DNA of 11,531 nt from IMGVR_UViG_3300008216_001605:1-11531, one strand, 5' to 3'. Shown: positions 174-9,162, numbered from the stretch's first letter. Numbers and translations: made by a program. The notes: generated from the sequence alone by a model not told the origin.

Positions 174-1010
174 ATGGCAGACGATGTTCTAAATCGGATA
201 GAGAAACACATGGAGGGTAATACGTTGGCCCTTTCTGCTGTTGCGGAAGTCTTGCAGAAGATGGATGACCGTTTTATTCGTGATGAAGATGCGGTTCTTG
301 CAAAACAAGAGCAGGAACAGGCGTTAGATGAACGGACTACAATGGTTAAAGCCATTGCTTCGGAAGTCTATGGCATGATTAAAGCTGACAATGGTATGGA
401 CGTAGATGGCACGAAGGTACGGTCTGGAACTAGGATGAAGGGTAGGGGTGAAGATTCTGAATCTCCAGTAAATCCTACTACTAAAATTTCAGATCAGCAA
501 GCCACCATTCAAGCTGCAGAAGATGAAGAAGAGAATGGAAAAAAGAAATTTAATTTTGACAAGAAGCAGGATGATGAAGAAGAGGAAGAAGTAGAAAAGG
601 AAGGAAATGGCGCAAAGGAGTATCCTGAGGAAGAAGAAGAAGCAAAGAAAGGAATGTATAAGGGCGAGGATGAAGATAAGGAAGAAGATGATAAAGAGAT
701 AGAAGAGATGGCTAAAGAGCTTGATGCTTTGAAAAAGCAGATAGCTAATACTGAGGCTAATATGCAAAAGGCGGTGCAAGCAGAGTCGGAGCAACGGCTT
801 CGGAAGATGGGATTTAGAGAGGAATTGGGTCTTCAAGCTCCCCAACAGATTAACCCCCTGGGAATTGATGGAACTACGCCACTTATAAAAGCACAGGAAT
901 CTGTGGATACAGTTGATCAGTTAGCTGGTATGTCTTATAAGGAACTGCGTAACCTTCAGGCTCAGATTGAAATGGGGAATACTGATGGGGTACCACGGGA
1001 ATTACTATAA
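174..1010 (+). CDS. Capsid scaffolding protein (putative)
   Basis: 278 aa with a strong SD, an E/D/K-rich low-complexity centre and helical/coiled-coil ends; lies directly upstream of the major capsid gene, the usual scaffold position. Confidence 0.75.
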   Translation: MADDVLNRIEKHMEGNTLALSAVAEVLQKMDDRFIRDEDAVLAKQEQEQALDERTTMVKAIASEVYGMIKADNGMDVDGTKVRSGTRMKGRGEDSESPVNPTTKISDQQATIQAAEDEEENGKKKFNFDKKQDDEEEEEVEKEGNGAKEYPEEEEEAKKGMYKGEDEDKEEDDKEIEEMAKELDALKKQIANTEANMQKAVQAESEQRLRKMGFREELGLQAPQQINPLGIDGTTPLIKAQESVDTVDQLAGMSYKELRNLQAQIEMGNTDGVPRELL

Positions 1011-1034: not shown

Positions 1035-2375
1035 ATGGCTAATCCTAGTTTATCAGAATACCTAGCACAGTCACAGCGGGGCTTGTATCAGTCGGTATTC
1101 GGCCCTGAATACCTAATGAAACAGTCCTATTTCACTGTTGATACTGCTACTGGTATCTTCAACACAACTTATGGACGCAAGGTGTGGCAAGCTTTGAACA
1201 ATCAGACTCGTTTCTTCAACGCTGTCCCAAGGGTAGTTTGGGGTAATACGGCTGGTTGGCGTGTCAGAACTGACCGTGGCTCAAGTAGGTCACGACCAGT
1301 AACTGAGACGGGGAGTCTCCCCACTGTCGATGTCTCCAATATTGCTACAGTATCGAGCTTGCCTCGTATTGTTTCCACGACCTTCGGTGCTTCTGTGAAG
1401 TCCGTCTTCACCGCACAGTTGGAAGGTGGTATCGGAGATGTTCTGGCGATGGAGAATGAGAATTCTCAGCTTGACCATATCAAGGAAATCAATGAAGAAT
1501 TGTTGGCTGGTGGGGCATTTATTGTATCTGCTGGTTCAACGACCTCCTTCACAGTACCCGCTGCTGTGGCCCATCACTTTAAGGTTGGTGATGCGGTAGC
1601 TATGAATGATGCTACCAGCGGTTTTGACAGGACTAGTGGTTCTGTAGTTTCTGCGGTTAACACTTCTACTGGGGTAGTGACCGTAGCTACTGGCACAGCT
1701 TTCGCAGATGGTGACCTAGCCTATTCTCACAGTAGGGCTGGTTTCACTTCCCTTGATGACATTGTAGCCGAAGATGGCATGGTTATCGGGGGTGTGACGA
1801 ATGGTGCCGAAGTTAGGGCTTATGACCTAACTTACAGTGACCGTGTTGCTGGTTCGTGGAATGCTGCTGCCAGCGTTCAGTTAAATAGTGGGACTGGACG
1901 AGCTTTATCCCTCACTCACCTGGATACTGCTATCCAGAAGATTCGTGAGAATGGTGGGGAGCCAAAGCTCATCCTTTTGGGCCATGACCAATACTTTAAC
2001 CTTGAACGTTTGTTAAACTCTAACCAACGTTATATGGGTCAGGAAGAGTACCAAGTTGGTGTGGGTTCAGAACGAACCTTCCCAGGTACCCGAACTGGTT
2101 TGGTTTTGGCTACCTATCAGGGCATTCCCATCCTACCAGATGCGGATGTGCCTAAGTCCGTGGCATCTAATGATGCAGTTTTGGGTTCCAACATCTATGT
2201 GTTGGATACTGATTACCTAGAAATTGCAGTTGCTCAACCTACGCAGTATGTTGAGAACCGTGACTACTTTGCTGCTAATGCGTTGGTAGTGAGGGGATTG
2301 CTCTACACAATGGGCGAAATGCGGTGCAAGAATCTCTGGGTACAGGCTAAGATTGGGGATTTGAACGCTTCCTAA
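1035..2375 (+). CDS. Major capsid protein (HK97 fold) with a beta-rich insertion domain
   Basis: 446 aa with SD AAGGAG. HK97-like succession of segments: VWQALNNQTRFFNAVPR, E-loop-like VTETGSLPTVD, spine helix DHIKEINEELL, A-domain LDTAIQKIRENGGEPKLILL and YQGIPILPD...IYVLDTDYL. Followed by a strong terminator. Confidence 0.85.
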   Translation: MANPSLSEYLAQSQRGLYQSVFGPEYLMKQSYFTVDTATGIFNTTYGRKVWQALNNQTRFFNAVPRVVWGNTAGWRVRTDRGSSRSRPVTETGSLPTVDVSNIATVSSLPRIVSTTFGASVKSVFTAQLEGGIGDVLAMENENSQLDHIKEINEELLAGGAFIVSAGSTTSFTVPAAVAHHFKVGDAVAMNDATSGFDRTSGSVVSAVNTSTGVVTVATGTAFADGDLAYSHSRAGFTSLDDIVAEDGMVIGGVTNGAEVRAYDLTYSDRVAGSWNAAASVQLNSGTGRALSLTHLDTAIQKIRENGGEPKLILLGHDQYFNLERLLNSNQRYMGQEEYQVGVGSERTFPGTRTGLVLATYQGIPILPDADVPKSVASNDAVLGSNIYVLDTDYLEIAVAQPTQYVENRDYFAANALVVRGLLYTMGEMRCKNLWVQAKIGDLNAS

Positions 2376-2877: not shown

Positions 2878-3801
2878 ATGGCTAATGAACGACATAATGA
2901 TGCACGAGAATGGGAGATAGATTCATCTACCCGACAATCTGTTCATCCTTATACAAAATATTCTCCCTTCAGAACTGCAACTTCTACTACAGCCGCTAAT
3001 TTATTAGCTATTGATAGGGGGGAGATTGCAGTAAACTGGGTCACTAACCCTAGAATAGAGGCTACAGATGTTAGTATGTTTACAGCTACGGGAGCTACTG
3101 TTGCTAGAGATACGGGCCAAGCAGCTGTAGGGTCAGCTTCTCTCCTCACTAATCCAGGCAATGCTGGAGCAGGTGAGGGTTTTTATTGGGTTTCTCCTAG
3201 TGTCCCTTTTAGTGTAACTCCTCAACATCTCACGGCTCAATGTGAGGTTAGGGGAGCTTCTGCATCAGGAAGTGTTAAGATACAGATTACTGATGCCTCT
3301 GGTGTGGAACTTGCAACTTCTGCTGATACTAATTTAACCACCAGTTTTGCACAAATTACTGCTTCTTATTCCATAGCAGGCAGTACTGCCGCAGCAACGT
3401 ATAGAGTTTATGTTGTTAGTGCTGCAAACCATAATATTAACTGGTATACTGATAAGATAATGTTTGAAGTACGGGAAGATACTAATGCTGTATCGACTTA
3501 TGTAGATGGAGCTTCTGGTTTGAATTATGAATGGTCGGGAACAGCTAATGCATCTACTTCTAGGAAGCGTCCTGCCATGTCTGTCATACGTGGGATACAG
3601 ATTAAAAATGAATCTGGGACTAGTGCTGAAATTGTGTATGTATCTTTTGATTCAACCGCTTCTACTACTACGGGAATCTCAGTATTAGCGGGGGCAACGT
3701 ATGAATCTAATTTTCCTATAGACTTTAGAGAGAATGTCTCCATAATATCTGCTTCTGGAACTCCTACTGTTAGTGGAGTAGTGTGGGGAGTCAATGGTTA
3801 A
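2878..3801 (+). CDS. Virion structural/decoration protein with a carbohydrate-binding-like beta-sandwich insert
   Basis: 307 aa, rich in Ala/Ser/Thr/Gly, SD AGGAG. NWVTNPRIE...YVDG resembles phage CBM-like jelly-roll domains; C-terminal beta-strand domain IQIKNESG...IVYVSFD...GISVLAG. Confidence 0.55.
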   Translation: MANERHNDAREWEIDSSTRQSVHPYTKYSPFRTATSTTAANLLAIDRGEIAVNWVTNPRIEATDVSMFTATGATVARDTGQAAVGSASLLTNPGNAGAGEGFYWVSPSVPFSVTPQHLTAQCEVRGASASGSVKIQITDASGVELATSADTNLTTSFAQITASYSIAGSTAAATYRVYVVSAANHNINWYTDKIMFEVREDTNAVSTYVDGASGLNYEWSGTANASTSRKRPAMSVIRGIQIKNESGTSAEIVYVSFDSTASTTTGISVLAGATYESNFPIDFRENVSIISASGTPTVSGVVWGVNG

Positions 3802-5300
3802 TGGGTACCTCTACGATTCAAACTGCAGTAGGTAAAATACCTAGTCCGTCTAATTGGGCATTCAATACTGAGATGTATCAGACTGTTGGTATTGATGCTA
3901 CCATACTTCCTATTGAAAAACAAGACAGTGGTAAGGTCACATTAGAAGATATTTCTAGTGCCCTTGATGAATATAAACGTTTATTTAAAGCGGGAATAGC
4001 ATCTAAAGCCGAACTTATAACTTTGTCTAGAGCTTATCCCGATGATTCTACTTATTCTAAAGCTGTCTCTAAATTAAGTGAAGGCGATGCGATGGTCTTA
4101 GGTGGCCCCGCATCGGTGGAATTAATTGATAGAGAAGGCCATTTAATTACTACACAAGCTTTAGAAAAAGCTTTTCATAAATATATGGATAACTTCCGTA
4201 CTAGGAATACAATGGTACTCCACAGTGACGTTCAGGTAGGGTGGGCCTTGCCTGCTTATATTTCTAAAGGTGGTCAGATATTTAAAGCTGGGGTGGGAGA
4301 AAACGGTTTATTCTTCATTACGGAATTGAGGGACGATACCAAAATAGCCCAACGGGTTATGGATCAAGTTAATGAGGGAAAGCTAAAGAGTTATTCTATT
4401 GCAGGGAGTGCCACCAAAGTACAGAATATGCAGAAAGGTTTACAACCCTATATGCAAGTAGACGAAATGGAACTGGCCGAAGTTACGGTATGTGAGAAGG
4501 GTGTAAATCAAAGTGCTGGATTTGATATATTAAAGGCTAAAGGAGCCGTTACTACTTGTATTGATGGTAGTTGTCTCATACAAAAACAGGAATGTGATGG
4601 TAGTTGCGTTATTCAGAAAGAAGAAGGTAAAATTACCCAGATAGATTCAGGCTATAGAAATGCTACTGATGTAGAAATGAAAAATGGTATTATGTGCGGT
4701 ACCTGTAAATTTTTTAATAAACAAGAAGGGACATGTGATATAGTCGAAGGAATGATTGAAGATCACATGTACTGTAAAGTGTTTGCACCATTAGATGAAT
4801 CGCCAACTATTGATGAAGGAAGGGAGTTAATTATGTTAATGGAAAAATCAGACGGGTCAATTGATTTTGTGGGGTCATTCTTGAAATGGATAGAGAAACA
4901 AGGCACATCTTCATCGCCAAAAGAAATGGCTGCGACCTTTGCCACTCTATTGAATACTGCGGGAAGGCAAGCAGAACACCACCAATTACTACGGGAGTAT
5001 GGATTTCCTTCTGAGCAACCCCCCGAAGCTATGAGATATACCCCAGTCATTGAAACAGAAACAGATGACTTTGGAATTCCTGTACACATGAAACCCCCTT
5101 GGACTGTAAATGAAGCTGGGTCGCATCTAGGAAAGAAATTAGATGCTGATGCCCCTACTTATGATACTTCTATAGCTGCTAAAGCACATAAAGATTTGCA
5201 AACTAATATGCATCCTTGGTATTCTACAGAAATCTCAGTGTCTTTTCCAATACGGAAAGCTTTTTCCAAATGGTTTTCTGATAATGAATTCTATTTATAA
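3801..5300 (+). CDS. HK97-family prohead (capsid maturation) protease with long N- and C-terminal extensions, including a HiPIP-like domain
   Basis: ATG 3801 overlaps the upstream stop (TAATG), SD GGGGAG. Core at ~4092-4540: GPASVELIDREGHLI, catalytic His in VLHSD, Ser in LKSYSIAG, and LAEVTVCEKGVN. CxxC-x9-C-x12-C at 4695-4775. Confidence 0.85.
   Translation: MGTSTIQTAVGKIPSPSNWAFNTEMYQTVGIDATILPIEKQDSGKVTLEDISSALDEYKRLFKAGIASKAELITLSRAYPDDSTYSKAVSKLSEGDAMVLGGPASVELIDREGHLITTQALEKAFHKYMDNFRTRNTMVLHSDVQVGWALPAYISKGGQIFKAGVGENGLFFITELRDDTKIAQRVMDQVNEGKLKSYSIAGSATKVQNMQKGLQPYMQVDEMELAEVTVCEKGVNQSAGFDILKAKGAVTTCIDGSCLIQKQECDGSCVIQKEEGKITQIDSGYRNATDVEMKNGIMCGTCKFFNKQEGTCDIVEGMIEDHMYCKVFAPLDESPTIDEGRELIMLMEKSDGSIDFVGSFLKWIEKQGTSSSPKEMAATFATLLNTAGRQAEHHQLLREYGFPSEQPPEAMRYTPVIETETDDFGIPVHMKPPWTVNEAGSHLGKKLDADAPTYDTSIAAKAHKDLQTNMHPWYSTEISVSFPIRKAFSKWFSDNEFYL
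4562..4626 (+). repeat. 33-nt (11-aa) tandem duplication inside the protease gene
   Basis: tgatggtagttg at 4562-4573 and 4595-4606; encodes DGSCLIQKQEC / DGSCVIQKEEG. Confidence 0.8.
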
Positions 5301-5890: not shown

Positions 5891-6100
5891 ATGGTAGAGT
5901 GTTTTTGTGATATGAATGCATACGTTTTAACAGGTCTTTGTGAATGTGAAGAAGATTGTGTTTGTGAATGTGAGGTATGTGGGTGTAACCCACACGGTTT
6001 AAATCCAGAAATTGGTTTATGGTATGCAGATCCAGTAGAATCCCCTGTTTGTGCTTGTGGTGGAAACTGTAGTTGTGAGCGAACTTATGATGACAATTAA
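5891..6100 (+). CDS. Metallothionein-like Cys-rich protein
   Basis: 13 Cys in 69 aa, all in CxC motifs; strong SD TAAGGAG. Confidence 0.7.
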   Translation: MVECFCDMNAYVLTGLCECEEDCVCECEVCGCNPHGLNPEIGLWYADPVESPVCACGGNCSCERTYDDN

Positions 6101-6440: not shown

Positions 6441-6627
6441 ATTACTTCATTTAATTAATAGACTAAGAGGAATTTTTCTTTCTATGGAAGAAAGAGAAAA
6501 AGAAGTACGTGGGAATGAAACAAAAATATTAGCTTTAAATCTAGAAATAAAAAATCTAAAGGAAGATCAAGATGATGCTATGAAAGCTTTAGATGATTTA
6601 GAAACAGTTATTAAAAAATGGGAATAA
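6430..6627 (+). CDS. Coiled-coil hypothetical protein
   Basis: ATG 6430 after GGAGAAGGGG; heptad pattern ILALNLEIKNLKEDQDDAMKALDDLE. Confidence 0.65.
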   Translation: MTNRLLHLINRLRGIFLSMEEREKEVRGNETKILALNLEIKNLKEDQDDAMKALDDLETVIKKWE

Positions 6628-7085
6628 TAACGACTAGAATTTTAGATCTCACTAGGGCAGTGACCCCACCTACTTTAACAGAACCTTTAGATGAACATGA
6701 TACTGTGTGGATAGCACAAAGATTATTGGATGCCAATCTGATAGGCGGTGCAATGCAACGCAAAACCCTAGACAGTAAGTATTGGACTTGCACCCGTTTG
6801 GATTTCGATGCTATAATCAAGTGGGATTGGACGGACAATAAAAAATATGTAGCAGAAAAATATGATTGCGATAACTTTGCCTTTAGCTTTAAAGCCAGGA
6901 TGGATAGAAAATTTCATTTAAACAATGTGGGATTGGTGGTTGACTATTCGGGTGGACACGCTTATAATTGTGTCGTCTTTTCGGATGGCACGGCCGAACT
7001 CTTTGAGCCACAGAGCGATTTATTCACGACCTCCCAATTAGGGACTGGATACTATAAATGTGAATCGGGATTTATATTAATATAA
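6618..7085 (+). CDS. Papain-like/transglutaminase-like cysteine protease (MOA lectin C-terminal, Agglutinin_C-like domain)
   Basis: Motifs YDCDNFA (Cys), GHAYN (His) and FEPQ (Glu) in the family order, preceded by D-x-x-Y. Confidence 0.75.
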   Translation: MGIITTRILDLTRAVTPPTLTEPLDEHDTVWIAQRLLDANLIGGAMQRKTLDSKYWTCTRLDFDAIIKWDWTDNKKYVAEKYDCDNFAFSFKARMDRKFHLNNVGLVVDYSGGHAYNCVVFSDGTAELFEPQSDLFTTSQLGTGYYKCESGFILI

Positions 7086-8029: not shown

Positions 8030-8854
8030 ATGAGTTTATCTAAAATTGAAATTCATGAGAAGGTTTTATACCCAGTCACAAAAGTTTTAGCTGGGCAAGC
8101 AGGCGGAAGTGGAGTATTGGTTTATAGTGAAGAAGACCCCGATAAACCTAATAACTACATAAATATAGCTTTGACATGTCAACACGTTATTGATGGGGCC
8201 ATTAAAGTATCTGAACAATGGGATAACGTTCTTAAAAAGGACGTAAAGACTGACGTACTAGAAGAAGTTCGTATTGAAGTCTTTGACTATGACAAGAGTA
8301 AAGTAGTGTCTGCTAATTCTACGACAGCCCAAATCATTGCGTATGATAAACACCATGATTTAGCTGCTGTTAAATTAAATAATACTAGACCTATGGCTCA
8401 TGTAGCTAGTATTATTCCCAAAGAAGAAATAAAAGACTTACAAGTTGCTGATCCTATATGGGTTAGCGGTTGTTCGCTCCTTCATGACCCCTTTCCCAGT
8501 CCAGGAAATCTAACGTACCTTAGAGAAATCATTGACCAGAAATCATATGTAATGCAGAATGCTCCTAGCATCTTTGGAAATTCTGGTGGTGGTTTGTTCC
8601 ATGGAGATACTGGACATTTATTGGGGCTAACGTCTAGAATTACTTCTACTCAATTAGGATTCGGTATAGATATTATGACATGGATGGGATTTAGCACCCA
8701 CCCAGAGAGATTATACGAGTTCTTTGAACACCAAGAACTTCAGTTTTTGTTTGACTCTACGGATAATTATCATGATGCATTACATCGTAGAGACAGTCGT
8801 AGGCACGAAGCTTTACGAAATCTCTTGTTTGAATCTAAGGGAGAAAGTCCATAA
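8030..8854 (+). CDS. Trypsin-like (S1/HtrA-like) serine protease, stand-alone
   Basis: GSGV, ALTCQHV (His), HDLAAVKL (Asp), IFGNSGGGLF (Ser); SD AGGAGG. Confidence 0.9.
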   Translation: MSLSKIEIHEKVLYPVTKVLAGQAGGSGVLVYSEEDPDKPNNYINIALTCQHVIDGAIKVSEQWDNVLKKDVKTDVLEEVRIEVFDYDKSKVVSANSTTAQIIAYDKHHDLAAVKLNNTRPMAHVASIIPKEEIKDLQVADPIWVSGCSLLHDPFPSPGNLTYLREIIDQKSYVMQNAPSIFGNSGGGLFHGDTGHLLGLTSRITSTQLGFGIDIMTWMGFSTHPERLYEFFEHQELQFLFDSTDNYHDALHRRDSRRHEALRNLLFESKGESP

Positions 8855-9162
8855 TGTTAGATGAACGAAGATGGATAGCTCAGAACTGGAAGATTCCCGA
8901 TACAGTACATTGGCATCCTTGTTGTCAGGAACACCCAGACGTTTCAATCCAACAATCTTTAGTAGGAAAGACATCTTCTGATGATTCAGAGAAAACCTCA
9001 GTAACTTTTAGATGTCCTAGAGGTCATGAGTATGAAGCTCCTGAACCCTTTATTCTTACTACACCTGATGCAGAATGTAATTCTGGCCCGTTATGTATTT
9101 ACTGTTATGTTACATGGTTACATATTAATATTGGCACAGAAGAATTTATTGTCAAAGATTGA
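8854..9162 (+). CDS. Cys/His-rich putative metal-binding protein
   Basis: HWHPCCQEH, CPRGH and C-x5-CIYC; TAATG coupling. Confidence 0.65.
   Translation: MLDERRWIAQNWKIPDTVHWHPCCQEHPDVSIQQSLVGKTSSDDSEKTSVTFRCPRGHEYEAPEPFILTTPDAECNSGPLCIYCYVTWLHINIGTEEFIVKD

Follow-up and report, generated by a model that had tools for sequence, protein, structure and literature searches.

The protease gene and its domains

The window analyzed here is a stretch of 11,531 nucleotides (IMGVR_UViG_3300008216_001605:1-11531), an 11.5-kb part of a viral record in IMG/VR that is ~15% complete. It carries the gene of a capsid maturation (prohead) protease that bears passenger domains (3801..5300 on the plus strand, as are the other window features described below), which was assigned from the list of open reading frames (ORFs), the translation, Pfam S78 and PHROG. 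One of these passengers, a 57-residue module with four cysteines that resembles proteins of the high-potential iron-sulfur class (HiPIPs), is the subject of this study. In textbooks, HiPIPs figure as free electron carriers in the periplasm of bacteria, but the HiPIP fold appears here as a fused and strongly conserved domain of a capsid maturation protease in hundreds of marine viral contigs.

The ORF at 3783-5300 translates into 505 residues, by which positions are numbered below, and GTG at 3783 is its first open codon. In 10 of 15 close relatives, however, a stop codon stands 2-3 codons ahead of Met7, and database homologues have a length of 499 aa. The gene thus most likely begins with ATG at 3801 (Met7), giving 499 aa, rather than with GTG at 3783; the ESM Atlas entry also begins at residue 7. 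ATG 3801 overlaps by one base the stop codon of the preceding ORF (2878-3801). As judged from its sequence, the product is an S78 (HK97-type) prohead protease. It matches Peptidase_S78 (PF04586, Caudovirus prohead serine protease) with 24.8-26.3 bits against a cut-off of 21, its fragment 1-260 scores 24.4 bits against the related XkdF model of Pfam (cut-off 24), and it matches the PHROG head maturation protease phrog_23555 with an E of 4.6e-16. His147 and Ser205 are located in two S78 motifs and are invariant among 73 aligned sequences; by comparison with the family, they would be the catalytic residues.

The anatomy of the protein was derived from this 73-sequence alignment and a full-length AlphaFold2 (AF2) model. 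A conserved N-terminal helical region precedes the core (residues 54-96, 3942..4070; AF2 helices with pLDDT 77-90 and many invariant columns), followed by the S78 serine protease core itself (residues ~97-256, 4071..4550; PF04586, PF14550, phrog_23555 and invariant columns). Next come a Cys-containing linker delimited by the alignments (residues 257-281, 4551..4625; predicted disordered, pLDDT ~30, dN/dS 0.10), the mini-HiPIP module (residues 282-338, 4626..4796; bounded and characterized by indel boundaries, profiles, AF2, Foldseek and dN/dS), and a second flexible linker (residues 339-360, 4797..4862; pLDDT <50 for 336-349, dN/dS 0.22). In the full-length model pLDDT stays below 50 in the linker stretches 240-281 and 336-349, while residues 283-335 fold. 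Behind the second linker lies a conserved C-terminal region (residues 361-460, 4863..5162) with AF2 helices at 362-405 and with invariant Arg395, His399, Gly407, Pro409, Arg418, Pro421, Val422 and Glu424. No relative of this region was found in Pfam, PHROG or the Atlas, where a search with residues 345-505 returned only a viral hypothetical cluster (score 0.75); it is presumed to be the part that docks to the capsid interior. The tail after residue 460 is variable and grows in relatives, giving proteins of up to ~1,300 aa.

An earlier note on this DNA, made from the sequence alone, had drawn attention to the four-cysteine motif. The string it quoted, GYRNAT...CGTCKFF, occurs exactly in the translation of 3783-5300, with the spacing CxxC-x9-C-x12-C formed by Cys305 (4695-4697), Cys308 (4704-4706), Cys318 (4734-4736) and Cys331 (4773-4775), so that the four putative [4Fe-4S] ligand codons span 4695..4775. 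The upstream tyrosine that it reported is Tyr291 within GYRNAT, a position held by Tyr or Leu among relatives. The motif also lies downstream of the protease core, as the note had stated, the core covering residues ~97-256 and the first of these cysteines being at 305. The extent given there, 4650-4790, corresponds to residues 290-336 and falls inside the module; the indels among homologues set slightly wider bounds, at 282-338 (4626-4796). It is likewise evident that the module is internal and that no signal peptide precedes it, and that the canonical G-W-C is altered, being H-M-Y-C in the sublineage of the window.

Four more cysteines just upstream (C259, C264, C271 and C275) do not figure in the earlier note. 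The first two belong to a CxDGSC motif (4557-4574) that is kept almost throughout the protease family, also where the HiPIP module is lacking, and the other two belong to a tandem second copy (4593-4607) that is specific to the sublineage of the window. In the clade that lacks the HiPIP module, a CxCxC stretch follows the CxDGSC motif. The CxDGSC region might form another site for a metal or a disulfide.

Evidence for membership in the HiPIP family

The HiPIP-like identity proposed in the earlier note is supported by the profile matches of orthologous modules and by the predicted fold. We built an alignment and profile from 28 diverse orthologous modules, in which the four cysteines (columns C24, C27, C37 and C50), one valine (V40) and one glycine (G42) are invariant. 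A search of 177,635 PDB sequences with this profile gave seven matches, all of them HiPIPs, the best being PioC of Rhodopseudomonas palustris (6xyv, 54 residues, E 5.5e-7). In the profile alignment, the four module cysteines fall on the cluster cysteines of PioC and of the HiPIPs of Rhodothermus marinus and Rhodocyclus tenuis, and the aromatic and aliphatic positions beside the cysteines also align with PioC. Phe310/Phe311, Val321, Ile325, Tyr330 and Phe334, which resemble the hydrophobic cage of a HiPIP, occupy conserved PioC-aligned positions in the sequence alignment; the Tyr330 position is Trp in most relatives. The Pfam HIPIP model matches 22 of the 28 modules. While the module of the window stays below its threshold, five orthologous modules (P0052, P0054, P0072, P0058 and P0046) exceed the gathering cut-off, with 32.4-24.1 bits against 22.

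The predicted structure points in the same direction. AF2 run on the module alignment gave a model with pLDDT 86.7, and all 17 of its Foldseek matches in the PDB are HiPIPs, among them that of R. tenuis (1ISU; TMq 0.70, root-mean-square deviation (rmsd) 2.2 A). The VIA matches of the module are also HiPIPs only, and a PHROGs search returned no match for it. From the profiles and the model, residues 282-338 very probably belong to the HiPIP domain family, and it is probable, if less so, that the module binds an iron-sulfur (Fe-S) cluster. As a member of the HiPIP family, it nevertheless stands outside the class of HiPIP carriers, because it is internal (282-338 of 505) and has no preceding signal peptide.

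Conservation and history of the module

We examined 121 family members for the module. It is present in 95 and missing as a clean indel from the other 26, and its four cysteines are invariant across the 28 diverse modules aligned. The strict module signature is also found in 75 of the best 80 of 355 IMG/VR relatives. Among 16 close relatives, dN/dS is 0.068 in the module, compared with 0.051 in the protease core, 0.12 in the conserved C-terminal region and 0.20 in the tail, and the surface residues of the module are under strong purifying selection as well. The motif is thus more than a chance arrangement of cysteines, given this invariance, the presence in 95/121 and 75/80 relatives and the dN/dS of 0.068. 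The module is a discrete unit of presence or absence, predicted to fold independently between disordered linkers.

In a tree built from the columns of the core and the C-terminal region and rooted at its midpoint only, module-bearing sequences lie on both sides of the root. The module is missing from one clade of 25 members (SH-aLRT 96) and from the isolated P0117. In that clade, 15 members keep the short CxCxC stretch in place of the module and 10 have nothing there. The simplest reading, in which the direction of change follows from the midpoint root, is that the module is ancestral and was lost at least twice; two losses would mean that maturation profits from the module but can do without it.

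Recurrence of the module in other viral proteins

In an exhaustive single-sequence HMMER search, the module turned up in three kinds of protein. The first are other S78 proteases of 400-1,300 aa, in which it always lies ~240-300 residues into the chain; the second are short free homologues of 57-99 aa (including P0155 with 62 aa and P0161 with 57 aa), and the third are proteins of ~175 aa that carry two tandem modules. Fusions to HNH, RNase H-like, GNAT and DUF5824 domains occur as well. These last fusions rule out that the module is restricted to capsid proteins. The only sequence match in the phage collection is the prohead protease of Pontimonas phage phiPsal1. In five long relatives of the window virus no second, free HiPIP was detected, each giving a single match, the protease gene.

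The tandem-module proteins (P0132, P0133, P0145, P0148, P0152 and P0164, from loci L089 and L090) share a conserved C-terminal IPDIEDL-like motif, and their genes adjoin ankyrin-repeat and VWA/VIT genes in metagenomic contigs. In an unrelated phage contig, which also carries ribonucleotide reductase and exonuclease genes, a mini-HiPIP-like protein of 156 aa (P0160, L091:5001-5471) is encoded directly after the portal gene.

Structural comparison extends this distribution. The fold of the model is closer to predicted structures from uncultured Caudovirales (TMq 0.77-0.82, rmsd 1.6-2.0 A) than to cellular HiPIPs. The matching BFVD entries include some named prohead protease, XkdF, SppA/ClpP-class protease and zeta-toxin-domain protein, and further ones ParB/sulfiredoxin, HAD-like protein and DNA helicase. 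Among the fold matches are also free-standing HiPIP-like proteins of 49-230 aa in uncultured phages and a 67-aa protein of Synechococcus phage S-SRM01, which is labelled with the HiPIP profile in UniProt.

Genomic context and virus affiliation

The protease is encoded in a head module near the gene of the major capsid protein (MCP), which is its substrate (1035..2375; Pfam SU10_MCP, 42.2 bits; PHROG major head protein), and the same gene order is seen in three related contigs (L002-L004). Directly upstream of the MCP gene, the translation gives an acidic, Glu/Lys-rich protein of 278 aa (174..1010), which has no family match in the Pfam and PHROG searches and is scaffold-like in position and composition. 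No partner oxidoreductase for a HiPIP was found among the genes of the window by Pfam and PHROG scans.

Several genes downstream of the protease gene deserve mention. An ORF at 5891-6100 encodes 69 aa with 13 cysteines, mostly in CxC pairs, and is metallothionein-like although it has no Pfam match; a related contig has, in the equivalent position, a counterpart of 70 aa with 14 cysteines (L002:11965-12177). A protein of 155 aa with a C-terminal ricin-type lectin domain (6618-7085; 35.9 bits) and a second protease, which is trypsin-like (8030-8854; Pfam Trypsin_2, 42.5 bits), are both kept in L002-L004. The ORF at 8854-9162 encodes 102 aa with several Cys/His pairs (CC..H, later C...GH, and C..C near the C-terminus); it has no family match and, by its sequence, may be a small zinc-binding protein.

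The only isolates with a similar protease and MCP are the haloarchaeal siphoviruses HVTV-1, HCTV-1 and HCTV-5 (27-32% identity) and one Methanofastidiosa virus. The magroviruses of Marine Group II archaea, which are marine viruses of 50-90 kb, likewise have an MCP and a protease similar only to those of haloarchaeal siphoviruses, and no auxiliary metabolic genes were seen in them (PMC5434244). The window virus shares with them the marine origin and this restricted likeness of MCP and protease. However, magroviruses all encode MCM and a family-B DNA polymerase, parts of an archaeal replisome that is nearly complete in them, and neither MCM (PF00493) nor family-B polymerase (PF00136) gave a match in five relatives of 51-85 kb (the records behind L020, L040, L078, L061 and L023), one of which is complete with direct terminal repeats. 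We therefore rejected an assignment to the magroviruses as unproven. GTDB gives a weak hint to the host: one 87-kb relative (L085) is binned in a Ca. Nitrosopelagicus metagenome-assembled genome (MAG), while of three short contigs two belong to a Dehalococcoidia MAG and one to a bacterial MAG that is unclassified. On the sequence evidence, the window derives from a tailed virus of the sea whose head module is archaeal-virus-like, and its clade may represent marine archaeal viruses of a group not yet described.

Possible role of the module

Classical HiPIPs receive their [4Fe-4S] cluster while still in the cytoplasm, ahead of Tat export, which means that loading is possible for a cytoplasmic fusion as well. 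HK97-type prohead proteases co-assemble inside procapsids and would thus bring many copies of the module into the interior of the capsid. The unusual air stability of HiPIP clusters comes from their burial by hydrophobic residues. Taking these points together with the findings above, we lean toward the explanation that the module is a genuine minimal PioC-like HiPIP passenger of the protease, which is stabilized by its cluster, is carried into the procapsid, and acts as a structural or interaction module and not as a diffusible carrier. In the host cytoplasm, the four cysteines would ligate a [4Fe-4S] cubane that is buried by Phe310/311, Val321, Ile325, Tyr330 and Phe334, and the correct folding of the passenger part of the protease would depend on the Fe-S supply. 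Inside the capsid, the module would be a compact, air-stable, cluster-stabilized element for structure or interaction, for example a spacer or a docking element. This suggests that an Fe-S cluster enters the viral head during assembly. The module would help capsid maturation without being essential for it, because one clade and one further lineage have lost it. The specific structural role, proposed by analogy, is the tentative part of this explanation and less likely than not.

Several observations weigh against the passenger explanation. The module of the window alone scores 14.6 bits against Pfam HIPIP (PF01355; E 0.042), below the cut-off of 22 bits, and the 101-residue fragment 260-360 gives an E of 0.54; since the window's own Pfam score is weak, the HiPIP assignment needed the orthologues. 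A site of four cysteines could also hold Zn or be oxidized to disulfides. The loss of the module in one clade indicates that it is not required for protease function, and its fusions to HNH, RNase H-like, GNAT, helicase and ParB proteins may reflect a generic role (redox or related to nucleic acids) that is not specific to capsids. Moreover, packaging, the fate after maturation and the structural role are drawn from general knowledge of HK97-type proteases.

In a rival explanation, the HiPIP fold has been kept, the Fe-S cluster has been lost, and the module is a small rigid spacer held by Zn or disulfides. The deviation of H-M-Y-C from the canonical G-W-C in the sublineage of the window, together with the sub-threshold Pfam score, would fit such a relic, the adjacent extra Cys motifs suggest a linker that is Cys-rich in general, and many viral Cys4 sites were at first assigned as Zn sites (PMC13251827 and a preprint on HBx, PMC12871745). 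On the other hand, the four cysteines and the hydrophobic cage positions are kept in very divergent relatives, including those that pass the Pfam cut-off, the HiPIP fold sets the four cysteines around a cavity of cubane size, and we know of no natural Zn-HiPIP. We consider this explanation unlikely. Less likely by far is that the module serves as an auxiliary electron carrier, a HiPIP of ~6 kDa that is freed by autoproteolysis of the linkers and feeds host electron transport in the manner of cyanophage ferredoxin or plastocyanin. The flexible linkers flanking the module would permit such a release, and free HiPIP-like proteins do exist in phages (67 aa in S-SRM01, 49-230 aa in uncultured phages), as do the short standalone homologues P0155 and P0161. 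Nevertheless, an internal module with no signal peptide could not reach the periplasmic side, the gene is a late structural one whose product joins the capsid during assembly, the head genes point to archaea as candidate hosts, which are not known users of HiPIPs, and the window encodes no partner oxidoreductase; we regard this role as very improbable.

A third possibility turns on the redox chemistry of the cluster, which in HiPIPs withstands air in either state, 2+ or 3+. The module could be a redox-state sensor or switch for proteins inside the capsid, its cluster being oxidized once the virion is in oxic seawater and reduced as long as it is in the cytoplasm, and the redox change could gate the activity of the protease or the release or behavior of packaged proteins. 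The strong purifying selection on the surface residues of the module is in line with this, and so are several of its partners, which belong to types that are often packaged (several classes of prohead protease and large proteins containing ParB, zeta-toxin or helicase domains); packaged polyvalent proteins have been described (PMC5512222). But prohead proteases do their work before lysis, while still inside the cell, and no redox transition thus precedes their function; moreover, the HNH, RNase H-like and GNAT partners are not known virion proteins. The idea is inferential throughout, including the persistence of the module in the mature capsid, and we think it quite unlikely to be correct. 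The same low probability is given to a broader version, in which aquatic tailed viruses attach a mobile, viral-type mini-HiPIP module to proteins that travel in the capsid, namely several classes of prohead protease and large enzymes that are packaged, where it would sense the inside and the outside of the cell by redox or be an iron cargo. If that were true, virions or procapsids would hold hundreds of iron atoms as air-stable clusters, a previously unrecognized Fe-S content of marine virus particles.

Novelty and implications

No account of this architecture came up in full-text literature searches that paired HiPIP or 4Fe-4S with prohead protease, capsid, magrovirus or polyvalent proteins. 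In latent form, the domain call is present in databases, since pipelines have placed PF01355 next to PF04586 on two metagenomic relatives and a few phage proteins bear the HiPIP profile as a label in UniProt; as far as we found, it has not been discussed. What is new is the architecture and its context, the HiPIP domain family itself being known.

To our knowledge, no Fe-S cluster is known in a head-assembly protein of a tailed virus, and if the module of the window virus binds a [4Fe-4S] cluster, it would be the first case known to us. Capsid assembly would then be tied to the Fe-S supply of the host in iron-poor oceans, and viral particles might hold Fe-S clusters transiently or permanently. 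A bound cluster would also make the module a very small (~55-residue) and probably air-stable Fe-S domain for protein engineering. Finally, it would add a case from a prokaryotic virus to the cryptic Fe-S clusters that have recently been discovered in proteins of viruses, work that concerns eukaryotic viruses (PMC13251827 and PMC12871745).

Comparison with known systems

Among cellular proteins, the closest counterpart of the module is PioC of Rhodopseudomonas palustris TIE-1 (6XYV, 7A4L and 7A58), a 54-residue HiPIP that is close to the module in size (54 versus 57 residues) and aligns with it over 49 positions. Both share CGTC, one aromatic residue after CxxCxx, C-x-x-V, I-x4-W-C, and an aromatic residue three residues after the last cysteine. 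In photoferrotrophy, PioC carries electrons as a free protein that is exported to the periplasm (PMC7462912 and PMC10304953). In contrast, the viral module is internal to a 499-aa cytoplasmic or capsid protein with no signal peptide, and its first cysteine is preceded by a short helix and a viral-type Y-R-x-A-T motif. With classical HiPIPs (R. tenuis, 1ISU; Rhodothermus marinus, 3H31), the identity of the module is just 14-24%; unlike them, the module of the window stays under the Pfam cut-off and is not a stand-alone carrier.

On the viral side, the S78 proteases of HVTV-1, HCTV-1 and HCTV-5 are 31-32% identical to that of the window over residues 95-258. These matches end at residue 258, and none extends to the HiPIP module or the C-terminal region. 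The prohead protease of phiPsal1 (AUV61415.1; L093:3809-5263) has both an S78 domain (144.8 bits) and a viral-type module, YRPAT...CGNC...C...YC, and the corresponding segment matches our module profile in hhalign with a probability of 95.6% and an E of 1.3e-8. There, the module is N-terminal (~60-113) and precedes the protease domain (256-409), whereas in the window it follows the core. Because of this N-terminal position, phiPsal1 represents, on sequence grounds, an independent fusion of the same viral-type module, with the shared Y-R-x-A-T, to a head protease. The host of phiPsal1 is an actinobacterium; the phage itself has been lost, with no further study (PMC6106888), and was therefore rejected as a culturable system for tests.

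For function, the analogy that we favor is that with benzylsuccinate synthase, whose beta and gamma subunits are HiPIP-like [4Fe-4S] accessories with structural or regulatory roles and are not electron shuttles (PMC12590467). The corresponding Pfam model (PF18524, HPIP_like) matches three of the viral modules weakly and below threshold (best 16.4 bits vs 28.1). In benzylsuccinate synthase, an anaerobic glycyl radical enzyme, the HiPIP-like proteins are separate subunits, whereas the viral module is fused to the protease.

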